This document shows, in pieces, positions 3,841 through 54,166 of a stretch of DNA of 64,000 bases. The position numbers and the translations under genes were made by a program. A model generated the notes under the pieces. It had not been told where the DNA came from. It saw only the letters and a program-made list of their open reading frames with translations, and did not search any database. Origin of the DNA: Parasitella parasitica NRRL 2501 (Eukaryota > Fungi > Mucoromycota); assembly GCA_025201805.1 (NCBI GenBank), contig MU619250.1:210425-274424 (forward strand), in the 5' to 3' direction. Within the stretch, counting starts at the first letter, position 1; each line of letters opens with the position of its first letter.

Positions 3841-5382
3841 ATGCTATCCAACTCGTTTCTTAAACGTTTTCGAAAGCTCGATGCTTATGCAAAGACTTTG
3901 GACGATTTTCGAGTTCGAACAGCAACTGGTGGAACAGGTAAGTTTCCGTTTTTTTTCAAGCATATTTATTCAGTATCGCTCAACAGTAATGTTCTCGTAG
4001 TTACTTTATTGAGTGCTTTCACTATTGCTGTACTCATTCTGTTTGAAGTCATTCGATATATGACTCCAATTATGCAATCCGAAATTATTGTTGATGGTGG
4101 AATCATGGTATATGGAATTTTATGAATGGCGAATTCATGCTAAATCCTTTATTTGTTGCAGGAAAAGTTGCCTATTACCTTTGATGTTACGTTTCCACAT
4201 GTCCCTTGCTATAGTAAGTTTTTAATTTCGCTACTTTATACCGGATTAGATGTCTTACAGTGTTTATTTAGTGTTAAGTTTAGATGTCATGGATGAAAGT
4301 GGAGAGCATATTAGCGAATACGATCACGATGTATATAAAGAGAGACTGGATGCAAGTGGAAAGACAATCTTGAAAGAGAAATCCGAAGGTATTGTATTGC
4401 TACTTTGAAACGTCGTAGCCAAATCGAATAAGTACTAAGTAATTTACAAATAAAGATCTTCGTAACAAAGCAGCCAAAATGGCCATGGAAAATAATGGGG
4501 CTGTGCCTGACGATTACTGTGGACCTTGCTATGGAGCCAACATCGACGGCGTTGCCAACCCTTGTTGCAATACCTGCGAGGAAGTGCAACGTGCTTATAC
4601 CGATATGGGCTGGAGTTCCGATTCAGATAGTTTTGAACAGGTAATTTGCTAGTGTGGTGTAGCCGCCTGTTATGTGTGTTTGACTATTGTGGTAGTGTGT
4701 TAGGGAAGGATGGAAAGAGAAAACCACAGTACAATCTCGCGAGGGCTGTCGCATGCATGGCAAGCTATCTGTCAACAAATTGCGTGGCAATTTCCACTTT
4801 TCTGCTGGCCGAGCATTCAGCCAAGGAGGAAGTCATATCCACGATATGTCTTCGTTTTTACACAACGAATTCAACCAGAACTTTATGCACGAAATTCATC
4901 ATTTGCAATTTGGATCTCATGAGTACAATACGCACAAACAAAAGCGTACCAAATCAAGTGTTCTTATTAACCCACTAGACAATACAAAATGGGGCAATAT
5001 GCAAGGTATGCGAAGAGAGCGAGAAAACAAAGACTCTTGGAGGAACTAACTAATTAGAAAAAAAGCTGCCATGATGTATCAGTACTTTTTAAAGATTGTG
5101 CCTACTGAATTCGACTTTATTAGCGGTAAACAAACCCGAACATTCCAGTATTCTGTCAGTAAACAAGATCAAATCGTGCATTATGGCGGTGGATTGCCGG
5201 GCGTGTTTTTTATGCTCGATCATTCACCGATGCGCATTATATACTCTGAATCAAGGCCTACGTTTGGCAGCTTTTTGACCAGCATTTGTGGCATCATTGG
5301 TGGTGTGTTCAGCGTAGCAAGCATTATTGATAGTATCCTCTACAGAGCTGAAAAAATCTCCAAACAAAGAAAGGAAATGTAA
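3841..5382 (+). CDS. ERV46: ER-derived vesicle protein Erv46/ERGIC3. Exons 3841-3937, 4001-4107, 4162-4213, 4272-4388, 4456-4640, 4696-5005, 5066-5382
   Basis: Motifs LDAYAKTLDDFRVRTATGG, YCGPCYGA...CCNTCEEV, GNFHF, YQYFLKIVPT, PGVFF and SICGIIGGVF. All introns are GT-AG with consistent phase. Confidence 0.93.
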
Positions 5383-5850
5383 ATAATACTCCCCTAATTT
5401 ATGTCTACTTTGTGTAACTGATATTGGCGAATTCACCCGCTTTTTCGGAGCGACCCTCCACGCTCAGGTTTTACTAATACGTATTAAAATGTGTTTTGTT
5501 GGCAAAGATCAATTCAAGTCTATTTCTCTGGTTACGATGAGCAAAGAAAAAAAAAAGGGCGGAGGCTTCTTAATGTACATAAGAAAGGCATTGAATGTTC
5601 AAAGTGTTAGTTTTTTGATGCAAACTTCATGTGGATTGGCACGTATGTTAAATGCAGAGCGTGTTTTGTAGTATAATGCAATTTAGTGTGCATAGCAGTA
5701 AAAATTTAGATCCTTTACTCCATGATTCTCGGACGAAAACGCTATGACATTTCCTTCACGACATGTGAACTTGTAAAACATATAAAGCAATCATTTGCAT
5801 CTTTTCTTCTTCTTCACAACTCTTTTGTTTTCCATTTAAACATCCCAATT

Positions 5851-7292
5851 ATGACTATTACTCGTGTACACGCTCGCCAAATCTTCGATTCGCGAGGTAA
5901 TCCCACCGTCGAAGTCGAAGTCTTCACTGCTAAAGGCGTATACCGTGCTGATGTGCCTTCTGGTGCTTCAACTGGCATCCACGAAGCCCTTGAACTCCGC
6001 GACAAAAGCAAGGCTGGATATATGGGAAAGGGTATGTATGCGTTTGTTCATTACAAAAATAAATTCAGACTAATATTATATTATACATTGTGTAGGTGTT
6101 CTTGAAGCCGTTAACAACGTAGTCGATATCATTGGCCCTGCTCTTGTTAAATCGGGTCTCAATGTCGCTGACCAAAAAGCCATTGACAAATTCCTCTTGG
6201 AACTTGATGGCACCGCCAACAAGAGCAAATTTGGTGCAAATGCTCTTTTGGGTATCTCCCTCGCTGTTGCTAAGGCTGGCGCTGGCGAAAAAAATGTTCC
6301 CCTTTACGTCCATTTTGCTGATTTGGCCGGTTCTAAGCGACCTTTTGTTCTGCCTGTTCCATCTTTTAACGTCATTAACGGTGGTGAACATGCTGGCAAC
6401 AAATTGGCCATGCAAGAATTTATGATCATGCCCACTGGTGCCAAATCCTTTGCTGAAGCCATGAAAATTGGTACCGAAGTCTATCACCACTTGAAGAATG
6501 TCATCAAAGAAAAGTATGGTCAAGATGCGACTAACGTCGGCGATGAAGGTGGATTCGCTCCTAATATCCAGGACAGTGGCGAAGGCCTTGATTTGCTTGT
6601 TGCAGCTATCGAAAAGGCTGGCTACACTGGTAAAGTTAAAATTGCTATGGATTGTGCCGCAAGCGAGTTTTATATTGATGGAAAATATGATTTGGATTTC
6701 AAGAATCCCAATGCTAATCCTGAAGAACGTGTTACTGGTCAACAACTCGCTGAACTCTACAAGACTTTTGCTGAAAAGTACCCTAGTAAGTTATTTACAT
6801 CACTATGGATGCGAAAACTACTTGTATTGACGTAATCATGTTATACAAGTTGTTTCTATTGAAGATGCTTTTGATCAAGACGACTGGGAAAACTGGGCTC
6901 ATCTGTTGGAAAGCTCAAAGTTCCAATTAGTAGGCGATGATTTAACTGTTACTAATCCTAAGCGTATTGCCATGGCTGTTGAGAAAAAGGCTTGTAACGC
7001 TCTATTGTTGAAGGTCAACCAAATTGGTACCATTACCGAATCTATTCAAGCTGCCCTTGACTCTCAAGCTGCTGGTTGGGGTGTTATGGTTTCTCATAGA
7101 TCTGGTGAAACCGAAGATCACACTATTGCTGACCTTGTTGTTGGTCTCCGTACTGGTCAAATCAAGACTGGTGCTCCCTGCAGATCTGAACGTCTTTCCA
7201 AGTATAACCAACTTCTCCGCATCGAAGAAGAGCTCGGCGAGGGCAACTACATCTATGCTGGTGAAAACTTTCGTACTGCTCATCTATTATAA
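5851..7292 (+). CDS. ENO: Enolase. Exons 5851-6031, 6096-6785, 6850-7292
   Basis: Motifs [68 protein letters not shown] and [12 protein letters not shown]. Catalytic residues are intact. Confidence 0.98.
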
Positions 7293-41857: not shown

Positions 41858-43956
41858 ATGCAATCTTACAATGCAGCCATTGAAAATGTACTTCCCATGC
41901 TGAAAAAAAGGTCAAAGGCATCGTACATCGGCATGGCCATTATATGTCTTGTCATCAAGCAAGTGTATTCAGCCTATTCTGTACCAAAGCATCTGCGACG
42001 ATTTCCCAAAGTCTCATTTCTCGCTATGATCAGGTCCTTTCTTACCAAGGAAGCAGTCGCTGAACGTACAAAGCGTTTAGTAACTCCTCTTACCGATGCT
42101 GGGCATGGTTTTTATGTGGTAAGTTGCATGTCCAATGTCCTTTACCAATCCTGGAGCTCAAACTATCCATGTTTTGCAGTGTAAAATCCCTTTCACCTGG
42201 ACTGTATTTGTTACAGATCCTATTGCTGCTAAAACGCTGCTCTTAAAGACAGGTAGGTGTAGTGTAAATCAGTGTCTTTTCTCCGCAGATGATTCACCTT
42301 CTATTTAGAGTCTTTCCCAAAATCTCATGCATTCTTTGACGCTTTGGGAGACAACAGCCCTGCTGTGCAATTTTTAGGCCGGGAAAATGTCGCTGCTTCT
42401 AATGGCGAGATTTGGAGGAAGCAAAGAAAGGTATACATAAAGCCGCTATTATAGAGACATATTTTATTTTGGTATTAATGTATCTGCCATAAGATCATGA
42501 ACCCTGCTTTCCTTCGCTCTTCCCCAATTAAAACGTTTAGCAATGTTACGCACAACTTGATTGAAGCCATTGAAACTGAAAGCGATGCTGTTCCTATCGC
42601 TAATCGTATGAAGGCATTTACGATTGATGCCTTGGGGTTATCTGCATTTGGTATGTTCGAAAAAAAAAAAGATGTTGCTGTTTATATTTTAAACAAATGG
42701 ATATGATTGTAGGATTTGATTTTCAGTCTTTGAATGGTGATCCTGAAAGATGGACAGAAACATACAACATTGCTATTGCCGGCCTATTCGACCCTTTTAT
42801 CAATATCTTTATTAGATTTGATTTCTTGTTGAATTACATCTCTCCAAGTAGAAAAAGAATCAGCAAAGCAATAACCAGATTCAATAGCATGTTGGAAGAT
42901 TTAGCCAATAAAAGACGCCAAGAAATCCTAAATGGAGATACTCAAGGTGTGCCTGAAAATGAAAAAGACCTGCTTACACTCATGATCGAAGCCGATATCC
43001 GAGAAGGCTCTAAAACAACTTCAACTGAATTGAGAGTAAAACGCATGTAGATGTTATTATTCATATTTCGATTATTAATCTATATTGTAGCATAATATTG
43101 CTTTATTTTTCTTGGCAGGTAAATTGCTTGCATCGTTGGCAAACTAAGGACAGTTTTGTGTTTACTTTTTGATTATATAGGCCATGATACGACTGCTCAC
43201 ACTTTGGCTTTTTGTCTGTATAATCTAGCAAAGAATAAGGTAACACGTACATCTTTAGTATGTCGAATGGCATGCATACTAATTGCAATGAATAAAGCAT
43301 GTACAAGCAAAGGCACGCGCCGAAGTATTAGATATTTTGGGCGATGAACCCAAGGATGTCGATCCCACTATGGAAGATTTAAAGAGAATGAACTATATGA
43401 ATATGGTCATTAAAGAGGTTTGTACATGAAGCATACAAAATTACTTAAATCATAAACTAATAGATAGTGCAGAATCTTCGCAGATGTGGACCTGTAGACA
43501 AGTTACTCTCAAGAGATACAGCGGAAGATATCAATCTGAATGGAACATGGATCCCCAAAGACCAAAAAATAAGCATTGATTTTAATTCTATTCACATGAA
43601 CCCTAAGCTCTGGCATAATCCAGAGGAATTTGTTCCCGAAAGATTCGAGCAAGGAGGAGAATATGACCAGCATACAGGATTTACATGGCTTCCTTTTAGT
43701 AACGGATCAAGACAATGCATTGGCATGAATTTCAGCTTGACTGAACAAAAGGTGCTTTTGTCAATGATATGTGAGTGTGAATATATACTTAATACACACA
43801 GCATGCAAGAAAGCTAACTACTATGTTGCCGATGTAGTGAAAAAATACGAGATTGACATTGATATTGATTCGCCCCATTATCATGCTGTTGTCTTTGATA
43901 CGGCATTTACTTTTGCTCCTCAATCGCTTTACCTGAAATTCGTAAAACGTTATTAA
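41858..43956 (+). CDS. Cytochrome P450 (Mucorales CYP509-like, tentative), 10 exons
   Basis: I-helix FFLAGHDTT, ExxR (KENLRR), PERF and heme motif WLPFSNGSRQCIG. The family assignment is unverified. Confidence 0.92.
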
Positions 43957-44287
43957 CCAAGTAAATAAAAAAAAAACTATAATACTGGTCATCAAACAAC
44001 TGCGCAGGCAATTTTGTAAGTATCACAAGCGGAAAAAGTTAGCGCGCACTTGAGTATGTGGGCATTGCCCAATTAAATATTCTCGCTCCCAGGCCCGAAT
44101 ATTTCCACGATATTCGACATTCGTTACTTCATCGTTCTCAAATCTAAAGAACCTCTTATGCCTCTCACAAAACAGCTCAGATTCGGTTATCCGACTATGA
44201 ATATATAATAATAATTAATTGAGTGCAGATGATCAGCCTTCTTACCTTTTTTTCTCTCTCTCTGATCATTGGCATTATATATCCCAA

Positions 44288-46422
44288 ATGATTCTCATCA
44301 ATAGACTTATTCAAGGACTCAATACAAAGACAGATATTTTGATCAAGATATTGGGCCCAAAACTGCGTACAACGGCTGGTGTCGCAAGCCTTAGTACTGC
44401 CATTGTATTGACCCTATTTTATACTGCAATTAAATTGTATATGAAGCCGCCAAAAGAATTAAGGCATCTAATGACGATGGATTACTTTTCATTCCTGGGC
44501 TATGTGTTTAGAGATGAATTGTTTGAAAAATACTCTAATGAAATGGTAATGCCTTTATTCAAGAAGGGTGCAAATGGCATTTATGTGGTAAATATCTTAT
44601 GGGCTGATGGCACTATTCGACACATGGCAGCTCATCTGTGATATATAGAGACCTACAGTTATCGGATGGCATGTGGAGCTTGCAAACCCTCTCATTGTCA
44701 AGCACGTTCTACTAAAACCAGGTATGCGTAAATATCGCTATTAATACAAAACAGACATGCTCAACTTTTTTTCATGTATATGCTATGTATATAGAATCTA
44801 CTTTTCCCAAGGTTAAAATGGATGCAGGTATCTCAGGAACATTGATTCACAGATTCTTGGGTGGTCCAAGCATTGTGTTTCTCAGTGGTGCAGATTGGAG
44901 AAGACATAAAAAGGTAAGCGCGATAATTGCTGTAGTGTATACAATGAAGATTTTTAATACACTCTACTCTATCATAGATTGCAAACCCTGCGTTTCAGAG
45001 ATCTATGCCTGTGAAAACATTTGGCAACTTGACCCTCAAAATGTTCAAAACCATGGAAAGTGGTGGTACAAACACGATTGATGTACTTGATATATTTGAA
45101 AGATTGACTCTTGATGCCATCGGGATTGCTGGATTTGGTATGTATACGCAGATATATATGCATGTAATAGTGCATATATAGCAGGTTGTATTTGGGCTAA
45201 AGTCAACTCAACGGCATTGTATCCTGCGAACCAATATAGATTTCGATTTCAATGCTCTCGGTGACAAAAATAACAAATGGGTGTATTACTATGATTCCGT
45301 CAAACTCGGAATGGCAAGCCCTTTCTTTGTGCTCTTTCCTTCCTTCGACACCAAATGGGTGCATTGGTTCAAGAAAAGACAACAAATTCATGACAATATG
45401 ACAAAATTTAAAGAAAATCTCGACAAAATTATTACAGAAAAAAGGGCTCTTGTGGCTAGAAACGTGAGCAATGGTTCAGAATCAGAAAAGGATCTGCTTA
45501 CTCTGATGATTGAAAGTGAAATGAGTCTAGGCAGTGAGACCATGTCAAACGAAGAATTGCGTGTAAGTATTTACACATGCACTTGTACATACTCGCACAG
45601 CAGTCTAATTATGTACATTGGCAAAACATGTAGAGCAATCTCTACTTGTTCATGCTTGCAGGACATGATACATCCAGTAACACGCTAGCTTTCACTTTGT
45701 ACGAACTGGCTAAACACCCTGTAAGTCATGCATTTCTCGCAAATAGCGAATTCGTTTGTAAGCATTGTTTAATAACAAATAAAACGGTATTTAGGAGATT
45801 CAAAAGCGAGCAAGAGAGGAGGTCCTCCAAATTCTAGGAGACAGCTCTGAAGACGCAATTCCTACATTAGAGCAAACAAAGCAATTAAATTACCTACACA
45901 TGGTTATGAAGGAGACTATGAGAAGACATCCTCCTGTCTACAACACCACTGCCCGTGTGGCCACAGAAGACATCAACACGGCTGGCATTTATATCCCAAA
46001 GGGAACCGAAATGCGTCTTGATATCTACAACCTTCATCATAACCCTGATGTTTGGATGGATCCCTACAAATTCGACCCTGAAAGATTTGCTCCTGGCGGA
46101 GAAGCTGATAACCAGGAAGGAATTGCATGGATGCCCTTTTCAAACGGTGCTCGTCAATGTATTGGCATGAATTTCAGTTTAGTTGAGATGCGTGTTGTCC
46201 TCTCCATGCTATGTAAGTTGAGCTATTATTTTTTCTATTTTGAATTATCGCTTTTACTGATTTTTATTCTAACTCGCAAACTCATTAGTGAAAAAGTTCA
46301 CCTGGACATTGCCTGTTAATTCACCACACAAAGATACTCTGCAAAATAGAGGCCTTGCTTGGGGTTTGGTGATCAATAACGATAAACTTGATATTACTTT
46401 TGAAAAGAGATATCAGCCTTGA
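44288..46422 (+). CDS. Cytochrome P450 (tandem paralogue, CYP509-like, tentative), 8 exons
   Basis: FMLAGHDTS, KETMRRHPP, DPERF and WMPFSNGARQCIG. The last exon 46289-46422 ends FEKRYQP*. Confidence 0.92.
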
Positions 46423-48052: not shown

Positions 48053-50468
48053 ATGGAATGTTTGGAGACACAGCAGCTTTTATCAAAAACAGTATCATCA
48101 GAGAATACAACGACGAGCAAGATTGTTGGATGTCAATTCCATCAAATATCCTTCGCAGTGTCCGAACAAGGACAAATGCTAACTGTTGATCGCACACTGG
48201 AGAATCTAGAGGTGGATAAACATAATCTTATCGATGGCGTGAAGCAGGCAGTAGCCTGCTGCTCAAAAAGTCAAGAAGAATGCAATTTTTACCTAAGAAC
48301 GTCTACAAATACAGTCTATCAACTAAGCATCGATCTAAGGTTATGTCTTTTGAGAAAAGAAAAATAGTGCATACACAAGATCTGATATAATGTATATTTA
48401 GTAATAACGGACATCCTCGAAAACGATTGAAAATGAACCAAGATATGATGGCACAGCATGTGCAATCCATAAATCTGACTGCCATCGCAAGTAACATCAA
48501 CCACCTTTTAATGCATCAAGGCCTTATATTGATATCTTCAGAAACTGCCCAAAAGCTAAAAGATGGAAGATTGCAAGATGCAAGTGGGTTTTACACAGAA
48601 GACCTTGACATCACTTCACTTCAGTCTGTTGAAAACTTGCATTCAAGCTTTATGGATTTCTTTTCTTTGCAAACAAACGCTGGTTTGATTTATGGTACGA
48701 GAGATGGAACTGTCAATTGGCGAGATGTTAAATTAGAACAGGATACCTTACTATTCAAAATGGAGCAAGATGAACGAGTAGTGTTGGTAGACTTTATCCA
48801 AGCATCCAATCTAGCCGACACATTGATAGCTGTAGGAGAACACGGCACAATCATACGCTATACGCAAGCAGATCAAGGGCTAGAAATGAGACAATTCAAC
48901 TTACAAAGCCCTGTCTACTCCATTGACAAGGTGCAAGCCTTGAAATATATTGCATCAACAGGCATTGGGAGAGTATTATTACTTGATCTGAGCCAAAGTG
49001 ACAAAATAAGAACAACAAAGATGCTCAATACTTCAAACGTTAAACATTTGAGAGTGCTTGACGACGGCATCTTTGAAACCATATCTGAAATAGACGACTG
49101 CATCGTTATCAAAAGAATCAGATTTAGCGAGACACCCATATCTATTGAGAACGACGCCAAGGCCATGCAACAGCTAATAGAAGAAACGTTGCAGGAGCTG
49201 GCGCAAGAAGAAGCTTTGGTGAAATCTATGGAAATCAAAGAGAAGGTATGCGTATATTCCACCTGATATACTCTCAGATTACCAAATTCCAACTAGGAAT
49301 TGAGCGATAAGCTCGCGTCAACGAATCGCACATTGTACGCCCTTAGAAGCATCAACGACAAGCGAGAGTTGGGGCTATGCAATACTTTTGATTCGACAGG
49401 GTTTGAATTTTCTGTGCGTCCTATCACTAAATCAAATTCAAGTGAAAATTGTAGTGTCAATACACAGGCTTATCTGCGGATTTGCATCAAAAGTTCACGG
49501 TTTTTTGATCTGGAGGGATGGGATTTATCGATTCAAATGTTTCCCATCAATTCATTTATAGGTGAAACAAGGCTGATATCAGTCGTTGGTTTTGAACCGT
49601 ATTACGAAAATGGCATTGAACGTCATGTCATTTGGGAAAGGGACATAAAGCTTGATCTGGCCAAACAACAATTGCCAGCTAAAGTGAGTGCCACACTGAT
49701 TACGGCCGTGGATGACAAAAAAGAGCTTCAGTTTCCAGTTTCAGAAATGATTGTTGACGATATTCACTTTGCTACGCCGTGCAGCTCTCATATCAAATCG
49801 AGCATAGAGCGTAGAGGTCTAGATGAAATTTCAAGTCGGTTCATGCAATCATACGAGCAACAGAAACTGCATGATAGAACTGGAAGATACCCGTTTGCTC
49901 GATTGTTGCAACAACAGCAACGAACAAAACATGACCTGCCCCATCAGAAAAACGTGCATATTCGATATATAGTGTCTTCACTACGTGATGAGCAATATAG
50001 ATCAATTTTGCCCAGCATCCTATGTGAGGGTCATTCTAGCTACGCGCACGATTTCTTCCATGGCAACGCTGAGCAGGCGTTATTTACAATGGCTAGCTAC
50101 CCTGGATGTCCTATTCTTATTACTCTATCTCGAGGTAGTGTATATTGACATCCCTAGTGCGAAAAGGAAATCTTGGCTAATATAAAATGAGACTAGTCTC
50201 TCCCGATATGGTTGATTTCAGCATCCAATGCACGCACACTCCAGCGCTGTTCAAAGTGGAATCTATACTGCTGAATCGGATCCATCGTATCTTCTTGCAA
50301 GATGCAAAGATGATAGACACCAGGTTATTAAAGCCATTAGAATCGTCCATTATAGAGCTACAGCAAGCGTACCAGCAAGATAATGAAGACCCGGAATTGA
50401 GAAAGACACTCAACATATTGTGCAATCTTCATAAACAAGAACCAATTGGGTGTTTAACCTTTACATAA
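48053..50468 (+). CDS. FAAP100-like protein (Fanconi anaemia core complex-associated), tentative. Exons 48053-48339, 48402-49245, 49297-50134, 50197-50468
   Basis: The gene model is phase-consistent. Architecture is beta-rich N-terminus, coiled coil, beta-sandwich. Motifs YGTRDGTV, LIAVGEHG, MRQFNLQSPV, DLEGWDLSIQM and LPAKVSATL resemble remembered human FAAP100 segments. Confidence 0.65.
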
Positions 50469-50615: not shown

Positions 50616-50875
50616 ATGTCAAATAAATTTGTAAACTACGTACTTTTTCCGGTTACAACTGTAGCGTTGATAGGAACAATTATTCGTAACCAGGCTCGTC
50701 CATCTAAAGCACACACTCAATATATAAACGATAACACACAGACACTGAATCAATGGAAGAAAAAAAACGATGGTTTAGGTGTGAATGATGTCGGCAGAAG
50801 GTAGATATCAAATTAAAGTTGTGTATGTACTGACTATTAATTGTTTTCGCTCAAAACAGCTGTGGAGGCGTATAA
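50616..50875 (+). CDS. 66-aa microprotein with an N-terminal transmembrane segment, ending DVGRSCGGV. Exons 50616-50800, 50860-50875
   Basis: A-rich start context, intron GTAGAT...TACTGAC...CAG, hydrophobic VNYVLFPVTTVALIGTII and a downstream AATAAA. Confidence 0.72.
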
Positions 50876-51223: not shown

Positions 51224-52081
51224 CTAGAATTTTGCAATGACGACAACGCAGCCTACTAGTCCAAGAGATGCCAATATTCTCCAGATACTGTAAGTTCGCT
51301 TAGCCACTCCAACCAAAGCAAAATGATCAATTAGACAGGCCATGATGATCTACAGAAATTCAGATGAGTTTTACTTGAGCTTGCTGCATTTTACACAATT
51401 TTTTTACCTGCGCACAAACAAAGATACTATTGACAAATTAGCAAATACACAATAAATTAGCATGTAGATTCAAAATTGTGTACCTTAATACAGTTGCAGT
51501 GCCTAATCTTGGTACTGTTAGAATGTTGATGATGACATAGTATGCACCAAGGATACCGCCGATCCAGGCGTACCAAGGAGCAGTTCGAACATGATCACTC
51601 GGCAGTGGCCTCTTTCCAACAGTGACATCCACAGCAAAGAATATCAAACAACAAGCGACAGCCACTGAAAAGGAAATGACTGCTGAGAAGCCTCTTCCTC
51701 CGTACCGATTCAAAGTAGCATTGCAACCTTTCCTCCGAGAGATTTGGAGTGTTAAAATATACCGAAGATACAATGTTGCATCTAGTTATGTCCCTTACCT
51801 GCTTGAAAAGCGATGGCTATACCAGACAAGATCAACAGAAAACCAAAAAATATTGGTTTATCTAGTATTTTTTTCACTTTCTTTTGTACTGATTCGGCAG
51901 TCGAGGTTTTTGCTAATTGATGACCCAATTCAATGTCGTTGCAAACATCATCAGTTTCTGTTTTTGGTTGATCTTGTGTAACTACCGAGTTATGAGTCGC
52001 AGTAGATGAATCTGAATGTGCAAGATCACTTTCAATATTCTTGACTTGTACTTTGTCAGTCATGCTATCCATATTAGTCAT
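51224..52081 (-). CDS. DMT-superfamily transporter of YdcZ/DUF606 type. Exons 52081-51799, 51727-51484, 51426-51408, 51349-51224
   Basis: IAFQAGCNATL...SAVISF...PWYAWIGGILGAYYV...VPRLG...AQIIMACLIDHFALVG...R. Confidence 0.85.
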
Positions 52082-54166
52082 GGATGAAAGAAGTAACGCA
52101 GGTATATATGAGAAGAAAAAAAAAAAAAAGTGATGCTTAAACTGAGGATTTTCGGTTAGATGAGCAAGAAGTAAAATAATGTGATCCAGGCAGAAGTTAA
52201 AAAAAAAAAAAAAAAAACACACAAACTGTATTTATTTGATTTCCAAGATTGATCAGATGGGAAGAAGAAAGGGTTTTCTGTTTAGTGATTACTGGCACAA
52301 AAAGACTTTAGGAACAAGTATATCTTCCGCCCATGGGAACACTTGTTTGAAAAGTTTACCCAATATACCTTTCCACATTGAATATACGTTTGTGAAACAT
52401 ACGCATGCTCAAAAATTTAACAGTGGCAGGAAAAGGCGAAGAACCAGGCTTATTATTCTTTCAATGTCGAAAAAAATGCAATTTCTCTAAACAAAACAAA
52501 TGGAAGCAACATTTACATACTCTATTTAAGGGTTATACTTTTAGGTTAAACGTATGTGCTCAGTAAGCTGCGTAAATAGTATTTTTGAAGTCGTATATCG
52601 TATTGTTGGAATTATTGTTGATTGTAAAAGCACCCTGTATGCAGTAGAACTCATTGGATACCATATATTTTTGTCATGAAATTAAAGAGGTCAAATGGCT
52701 AGTATATAAGCAATTGTCGCAAGATAAATAGTATAGTTAAAACATAAATGTTAAAGAGTGGCATCTATACATCATGTTTAATTTAAAACTTGTGGAAATT
52801 GCAGAGAATTAATGTAGTCAGCCCCTAAATCGGAATTTGCTAATAATCTAGACCTATTCTTCTATTTGAAAAAAATCTAAAGACATCAAACTCGCCTAAC
52901 GGCAAATCAACCAAGCGACAGTGTTCCTGATTGATAGCATCATCAAATGTTTATTACAGTGTCTTGAGCAAATAAAACAATGAAACTGGCACAAAACCAT
53001 GAAATGCTTGCGATTATAGGGTCTTACTAATTGTTTCTGATTCATGGTTATTCAGATTTAGGCGTTGACATTATACCTAGAGTGCAGATATTTTACAGGT
53101 GATCGCAATATATAATAAAAGATTCAAGCATTTGATATATATGTTTATGGCTAATTACATCTCGGTTGTAAAAGCTAAAATGAAAAGACGCTAGACTTAT
53201 CGTAAACGGCTGTGATACAAATAGAAAGCATCGAATGCTTTGAGTATCAAAAATATGCCGTTGAAGAGGAGATGTTGTTATTTCATTGTTTGTACCTAAA
53301 TTCCTAGAAGTTTAATATATTCATTGTCTATGGGATCCAGTATTTTCATAATATAGGATAAGGCTAGAACAACATGCAATAAAAGTGCATGGCATGGCAT
53401 GACTAATAGTGGACACATACAAACATTCTGACGCATATGTCACCTTCATACGAAAACTTGTGGTACAGCTCCTTCTCTTCTGAACTGATCCGTATATTCT
53501 ATAAATATTGACAACAATCAAATGTTATTAGATTAATTAAATATGGCAAGATTATATTATAGATATCATATTGGATTATCATGCTATGGTCACATTGATT
53601 AAACAGTTGACATTTCTTAAGTAGATCTTTAGGTAAAAAGCGATTGAAATAACGTTAGATCGAGTCATTCTTTTTAGCTGTTATTGGTAGCACCAAGTGG
53701 TGCATTATCGTACAGGACCAGCATATGTCTTGTTTATATTTGGAAGCGTGTCATTATTATCAGAGAGCGATGAGGGATCATGATAACAATATAGTATGGA
53801 TTCATCATGGTATATATAAATATACAGGGATAGTTCATTGTTGTGCTGATCTCTACATGGCGAGGGAGCAAGAGCGCGTGTACTACAATAGCTAACCACT
53901 CAAGAAATGACATAATAATGATCTAGAGATGGGTACAGAACAACGGAAGCACTATCAAACAGAGTCTATTAATATCTACTGCCATCTTGAAGAGTCCGCA
54001 CTGAACCAATCAAAGCAACACGTCAAGTTCTCCAGGAGCACATATTGAATGCAGTATAAATGCACAGCTTTTTTTTTCTTTTCTTCACATTTGACATTTG
54101 TTTTTCTTTCTTCTTGCTCTTTCTACCTGGATAACAAAACTATACCCTATTTTTATTTGATAAACC

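Follow-up and report, generated by a model that had tools for sequence, protein, structure and literature searches.

FANCB and FAAP100 share one domain order, which is a propeller, a long coiled-coil helix, a beta-sandwich, then an alpha/beta domain, and finally a bundle of helices (bioRxiv 10.1101/854158; 10.1101/2020.05.01.072751). In the human complex, the long helices of the two proteins form an intermolecular coiled coil that is bound by RWD1 and RWD2 of FANCL, and a twofold hub is assembled from the sandwiches and alpha/beta domains of the pair (bioRxiv 10.1101/854158). FAAP100 was described as an orphan, with recognisable homologues in vertebrates only, in the 2025 JCI paper that established it as a Fanconi anaemia gene (PMC12126235).

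FANCD2, FANCI, FANCL, and UBE2T are present in early-diverging fungi (Barua et al. 2024, PMC11061109), whereas, according to the supplement of the same study (PMC11061109), the fungal kingdom lacks FANCB and FAAP100. Homologues of FANCC and FANCE were found in Rhizopus azygosporus by Singh et al. using HHpred. Both parts of this pathway context are already published (PMC11061109; bioRxiv 10.1101/2022.07.05.498687). Our literature search found no paper tying FAAP100 to Mucorales, and, if an automatic 'FANCB' label that is discussed below is set aside, a fungal FAAP100-type scaffold appears not to have been reported.

The locus studied here lies in a window of 64,000 nucleotides of the pin-mould Parasitella parasitica (Mucorales), which is the whole stretch of DNA that was analysed and to which all positions refer. 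Reading of the sequence and its open reading frames between 47700 and 50800 gave a four-exon gene at 48053-50468 on the forward strand, with 746 codons and a stop codon at 50466-50468 (Table 1). The preliminary description of this DNA had proposed a four-exon gene of about 750 residues, and this was confirmed by the public run X1, in which a single 2542-nt contig matches the DNA without mismatches from 48048 to past 50600, with all three introns precisely missing. X1, the only public run with this stretch, is stored as contigs, and its labelling as RNA is conjectural; since only spliced RNA can yield an intron-free contig, the gene must be expressed and the four-exon model correct, exon 1 included. 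The locus is a genuine gene with a spliced transcript. A pseudogene or a gene-prediction artefact was ruled out by the spliced RNA and by the conservation of the gene.

Table 1. Positions of the exons and introns of the gene and of the domains predicted in its product (window coordinates; residue numbers are those of P0012)
Feature	Position	Strand	Description
Exon 1	48053..48339	+	ATG at 48053; 95 codons + 2 bases; N-terminal part of the predicted beta-propeller
Intron 1	48340..48401	+	62 nt, GT..AG; absent from the RNA-derived contig
Exon 2	48402..49245	+	In-frame 48403-49245, 281 codons; predicted propeller blades and first half of the long helix
Intron 2	49246..49296	+	51 nt, GT..AG, with an in-frame stop; splits the predicted coiled-coil helix; absent from the RNA-derived contig
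Exon 3	49297..50134	+	In-frame 49297-50133, 279 codons; second half of the predicted helix, beta-sandwich, and most of the alpha/beta domain
Intron 3	50135..50196	+	62 nt, GT..AG; absent from the RNA-derived contig
Exon 4	50197..50468	+	In-frame 50199-50465, 89 codons; end of the predicted alpha/beta domain and C-terminal helices
Beta-propeller, predicted WD40-type	48053..49140	+	Exon 1 and P0012 about 1-236; strands modelled at 60-230
Long single helix, predicted coiled-coil arm	49156..49371	+	P0012 242-296, 55 residues (AlphaFold2)
Beta-sandwich, predicted	49402..49755	+	P0012 307-424 (AlphaFold2); best-conserved part of the family
Alpha/beta domain, predicted	49786..50228	+	P0012 435-561; spans intron 3; within the collinear FAAP100 alignment that reaches residue 881
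C-terminal helices, predicted	50238..50438	+	P0012 565-631; placed like the helical bundle of FANCB/FAAP100

The deposited protein BD408DRAFT_411412 (P0012), a hypothetical protein of 640 residues from Parasitella parasitica, corresponds to exons 2-4 with 100% identity in each (residues 1-271 for exon 2, 272-550 for exon 3, and 552-640 for exon 4). It is without exon 1 and starts at the methionine at 48433 within exon 2. CEP12636.1 (P0055, 741 residues), which comes from another P. parasitica assembly, is 80% identical overall. For exon 1, the identity is 84% with residues 1-95 of CEP12636.1, which likewise begins MECLET, and 26-28% with the Thamnidium and Rhizopus homologues at their N-termini. 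The exons were searched singly, and the full-length tests were performed on P0012 and on the 741-residue homologue P0055. The neighbours of the gene are unrelated to it: two tandem P450 genes lie upstream and a gene for a YdcZ-type membrane protein lies downstream.

The exhaustive search of 1.84 billion representative proteins with the family profile gave 34 matches. All relatives with an organism given, in the profile search and in the word-indexed searches, were from Mucorales, and no family member outside this order was found among the organism-assigned matches of these searches. No named protein from outside Mucorales was thus available as a bridge sequence to animal FAAP100. Homologues occur in at least 20 genera of the order, including Mucor, Rhizopus, Thamnidium, Phycomyces, Spinellus, Absidia, Lichtheimia, Apophysomyces, Halteromyces, Blakeslea, Cunninghamella, Gongronella, Hesseltinella, Dichotomocladium, Mycotypha, Cokeromyces, Gilbertella, and Chlamydoabsidia. 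In the Mucorales alignment, conservation was highest in the columns of the long helix and the beta-sandwich; L253, E260, L277, N281, and L287 of the long helix (P0012 numbering) were near-invariant across the order. Judged by its sequence, the gene is old and kept within Mucorales and has diverged past the reach of HMMER from everything else.

The comparison with the Pfam family FANCAA (PF15146), which the preliminary description had proposed as a check, gave no match, either for each exon (E ≤ 10) or for about 35 homologues (E ≤ 1-10), where all Pfam matches were at chance level. Exon 1 gave weak beta-propeller hints in Pfam. The six-frame scan of the whole 32.8-Mb genome with PF15146 found nothing. 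Searches of PDB sequences by phmmer with exons 2 and 3 and with the Phycomyces homologue P0050 found nothing relevant. Four HMMER profiles were also compared with PDB sequences: A1 for the C-terminal half, A2 for the full length, A3 for the coiled coil and sandwich, and A4 for the alpha/beta domain and helices. At E ≤ 10, none of them detected a chain of FAAP100 or FANCB. Besides coiled-coil noise, their sole signal was a weak match, of WD40 type, between the N-terminal half and WIPI3/Atg18. By the measure of sequence comparison, the protein is an orphan.

The structural evidence consists of predicted models from shallow alignments of 12-23 Mucorales sequences. The AlphaFold2 model of P0012 (exons 2-4) was built from a 23-sequence Mucorales alignment and had a mean pLDDT of 75. 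The beta-rich N-terminal half, the coiled coil, and the beta-sandwich that had been read from the sequence alone were borne out by this model (Table 1), and the stretch QQLIEETLQELAQ...KLASTNRTL, which the preliminary description had quoted for the coiled coil, sits inside the long helix at 242-296. The five-domain architecture of FANCB and FAAP100 is present in the model of P0012; FANCB has the same layout, so the layout is common to both paralogues.

The Foldseek search of the PDB with the P0012 model showed the best matches to the chains 7kzp_P and 7kzp_Q (E = 2.9e-20 and 3.2e-20), over 655-665 columns with 14% identity and a TM score of 0.38-0.40. The next tier comprised BBS7 (E = 6.6e-11, TM 0.19), BBS9, BBS2, and 7kzp_O (E = 9.6e-10, TM 0.16). 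The best structure match is thus FAAP100 (E about 3e-20) and not BBS2/7/9 or an Integrator subunit, which had been named beforehand as competing families. The alignments to chains P and Q of 7KZP are collinear, with residues 47-637 of the model matched to 63/130-881 of the chain at 14-20% identity. This is compatible with the five segment pairings with human FAAP100 that the preliminary description proposed, which are putative. The whole-chain TM score is just 0.38-0.40 and the rmsd is 10-15 Å because the domains hang on the long helix.

The shape search of the ESM Atlas with the P0012 model placed three FAAP100 clusters on top, with TM scores of 0.51-0.56 and 466-520 residues aligned, and PF15146 was carried by 67-81% of the members of these clusters; BBS clusters reached 0.26-0.30 in this search. 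FAAP100 clusters again came first for the model of P0055 that the Atlas itself provides (TM 0.46-0.54). The language-model features of P0055 scored 0.94-0.95 to five PF15146 clusters, 0.89 to FANCB clusters, and 0.81 to PTHB1/BBS9. In all structural and feature searches on P0012 and P0055, FAAP100 was nearer than FANCB or any other family.

The identities of the 7KZP chains were inferred. Chains P and Q were taken as FAAP100 from their numbering to 881 and from the 'P100' naming; 881 is presumably the length of human FAAP100, as against 859 for FANCB. FANCAA covers 432 C-terminal residues beyond position 448 of FAAP100 (PMC12126235), and this extent agrees with chains P and Q, which run to 881, as FAAP100. 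Chain O was taken as FANCB by elimination, because FANCL is made up of RWD and RING domains and the other core subunits are built from helical repeats.

Compared with human FAAP100 (PF15146; 7KZP P/Q), the Parasitella protein is predicted to have the same five domains in the same order, and the alignment is collinear from the propeller to the last residues. It is shorter (746 residues, against 881), it has 14-20% identity in the structural alignments without any Pfam or HMMER match, and its family is detectable by sequence within Mucorales only. Like FAAP100, it co-occurs with FANCL, FANCD2, and FANCI; unlike for human FAAP100, no partner corresponding to FANCB, FANCA, or FANCG was recognised.

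On the predicted models, the protein very probably belongs to the FANCB/FAAP100 family, and that it is the counterpart of FAAP100 specifically is held with fair confidence. The preliminary description had read the protein as a FAAP100 orthologue, and this reading finds support in predicted structure, where Foldseek, the ESM Atlas shape search, and the language-model features all put FAAP100 first. The similarity is supported as remote, structure-level homology, and we infer from the models that it reflects homology and not resemblance. In this comparison the protein would be orthologous to FAAP100 rather than to FANCB. The FAAP100 claim is computational. We consider it rather likely that the gene product belongs to the FANCB/FAAP100 scaffold family as a very diverged fungal member, is closest to FAAP100, and would serve as a hub for FANCL.

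Whether the genome encodes other proteins of the Fanconi pathway had been left to a genome search by the preliminary description. FANCL, FANCD2, and FANCI are all encoded, so FANCL and FANCD2 are not missing from this fungus. FANCL was found on G000:C186 with 42.5 bits for FANCL_C (RING), 58.7 bits for FANCL_d3, and weak d1 matches in adjacent exons; FANCD2 was found on contig C64 (363 bits with the FancD2 profile) and FANCI on contig C34 (60.8 bits with FANCI_S2). The six-frame Pfam scan gave no matches for FANCA_CTD, Fanconi_C, and FA_FANCE and only a weak sub-threshold match for FANCF. The null scans for FANCA, FANCC, and FANCE say little and do not imply absence, since these genes are diverged in fungi and broken up into many exons. 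A complete BL100 trimer may exist in Parasitella.

The FANCB partner of such a trimer leads to one alternative, namely that the protein is the sole FANCB/FAAP100-type protein of Mucorales and forms a homodimeric or homotetrameric hub, either as the state before the duplication or after the loss of FANCB. This agrees with the search for a FANCB-like paralogue, in which the family profile found the gene itself alone in the 32.8-Mb genome at E ≤ 10, and with the empty PF15146 scan of the same genome. A diverged partner would escape this search, as human FANCB and FAAP100 share no easily detected sequence similarity and such a partner would be invisible to the family profile. In addition, as the protein is closer to FAAP100 specifically than to FANCB, the FANCB/FAAP100 duplication probably predates the animal-fungal split, in which case a FANCB partner should exist or have been lost. 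We regard a sole, self-pairing protein as unlikely.

According to another alternative, the protein is the fungal orthologue of FANCB, and FAAP100 merely seems closer because it is the slower-changing paralogue with the same five domains. UniRef calls the Phycomyces homologue P0050 'Fanconi anemia group B protein', and the top cluster in the P0055 feature search carries the same automatic name. The members of that cluster carry FANCAA (PF15146), the FAAP100 domain, so the cluster name is probably a paralogue mix-up, and the UniRef name of P0050 is probably the same mix-up. Human FANCB, the presumed chain 7kzp_O, has the paralogous five-domain layout and was matched over 628 columns, that is, over the full length, at E about 1e-9, but this is far below FAAP100: the FAAP100 chains scored ten orders of magnitude better, with TM scores of 0.38-0.40 against 0.16, and P or Q was the best chain in both FA core complex entries. 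The FANCB clusters (PF28312, PF28327, PF28318) reached the tenth rank in the P0055 feature search, with 0.89 against 0.95, and were absent from the ESM Atlas shape matches of the P0012 model. Human FANCB has a specific helical insertion that contacts FANCA. A FANCB orthologue is a rather improbable reading of these comparisons.

In the BBSome subunits BBS2, BBS7, and BBS9 (PDB 6VBU), too, a propeller precedes a coiled coil and a GAE-like beta-sandwich, as in the Parasitella protein; their C-terminal domains differ (platform/hairpin). The BBSome works in cilia and flagella, and Mucorales have neither. A BBSome subunit was rejected on the much weaker structural matches and on the lack of cilia in the organism. 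It is very improbable that the protein has only the layout of FAAP100 and is otherwise unrelated, of a propeller/coiled-coil/appendage-like build (BBSome-like, or an adaptor specific to Mucorales) and with no Fanconi role: BBS7, BBS9, and BBS2 do match the full-length model (E = 1e-9 to 7e-11), exon 3 alone is about as close in its weak feature matches to the BBS2 GAE (0.83) as to FAAP100 (0.82), and there is no sequence link to any FA protein, but the BBS matches have a TM score of 0.19 and an rmsd above 20-30 Å against a TM score of 0.38-0.40 for FAAP100, the BBS clusters reach TM 0.26-0.37 against 0.51-0.56 in the ESM Atlas and 0.81 against 0.95 in features, and no BBS Pfam family was found in the exons or in about 35 homologues.

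Under the FAAP100 reading, and by analogy with the human complex, the Parasitella protein would be the FAAP100-type arm of a hub that serves FANCL in this fungus. The long helix and the beta-sandwich would engage a partner, which may be a FANCB-like protein that escaped detection or another copy of the same protein. The first two RWD domains of FANCL would dock on the paired coiled coil, and the dimeric hub would position the FANCL RING ligase to monoubiquitinate FANCD2-FANCI in interstrand-crosslink repair. By this analogy, we propose that the Parasitella protein may bind FANCL and may have a role in crosslink repair. We also speculate, as a long shot, that the Mucorales ligase is built on a homomeric FAAP100-like hub of ancestral type, with a self-paired coiled coil and sandwich, together with FANCL and FANCC-FANCE(-FANCF). 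If this is true, the B/100 scaffold would be older than the animal-fungal split, and Mucorales would offer a simpler, genetically tractable core complex to study.

If the FAAP100 reading is true, the ligase scaffold, beyond the catalytic subunit alone, would be older than the animal-fungal split, and the fungal Fanconi pathway would be less 'minimal' than in published accounts. The activation of FANCL by the hub could then be studied in a fungus for which genetic tools exist, Mucor lusitanicus for instance. The DNA-repair capacity of Mucorales is of some medical relevance, as the order includes agents of mucormycosis.

Exon 1 of the FAAP100-like gene is missing from the deposited protein model, BD408DRAFT_411412 (P0012, 640 aa), which begins at the Met at 48433. 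This exon is present both in the RNA contig and in CEP12636.1, a record from another Parasitella parasitica assembly. The features of the region, together with the FANCL locus and a weak FANCF match elsewhere in the genome, are listed in the table.

Features in the window, and FANCL and FANCF matches elsewhere in the P. parasitica genome (G000)
Feature	Position	Strand	Evidence or remark
Two cytochrome P450 genes in tandem, upstream of the FAAP100-like gene	window 42697-46319	+	PF00067
Region absent from the deposited model	window 48053-48432		RNA contig, CEP12636.1
Small ORF MSNKFVNYVLFPVTTVALIGTII...	window 50616-50804	+	150 nt past the stop codon of the FAAP100-like gene
DMT_YdcZ (PF04657) gene, membrane-exporter-type domain, downstream	window 51441-52222	-	E 1.9e-15
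FANCF Pfam match, weak, sub-threshold (L013)	G000:C36:16682-17134	-	E 0.026, profile positions 2-144
FANCL gene (L001)	G000:C186 about 4370-5910	+	d1, d3, RING/FANCL_C parts

The small ORF contains a hydrophobic stretch (LFPVTTVALIGTII) and had no Pfam match, and the RNA contig from the public run X1 extends across its start. Its sequence also occurs at the C-terminus of the gene model of the Blakeslea trispora homologue (P0011), fused to it. The neighbourhood is therefore conserved in Blakeslea trispora, and the P0011 model is probably a false fusion. The P450 genes match PF00067 with E 9e-26 at 43467-43814 and with E 5e-34 at 45900-46316, and weaker exon matches precede each of these two. 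DMT_YdcZ is a family found mostly in bacteria.

The recognisable d1, d3 and RING/FANCL_C parts of FANCL were distributed across several exons. The six-frame match places include in-frame stops (TGA, TAG), as is normal for a match of this type that is broken by introns.

The Phycomyces blakesleeanus homologue (P0050, KAL0097331.1), a FANCAA-type protein, carries the automatic name 'Fanconi anemia group B protein'. An arthropod ESM Atlas cluster whose members carry PF15146, the FAAP100 family, was given the same automatic name. The FANCB name on FANCAA-type proteins looks like a mix-up of the FANCB and FAAP100 paralogues in automatic annotation.

P0012 and CEP12636.1 (P0055) were only 80% identical, although both records are labelled Parasitella parasitica. 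Such a low identity between the two proteins suggests strongly diverged strains, cryptic species or a fast-evolving gene.
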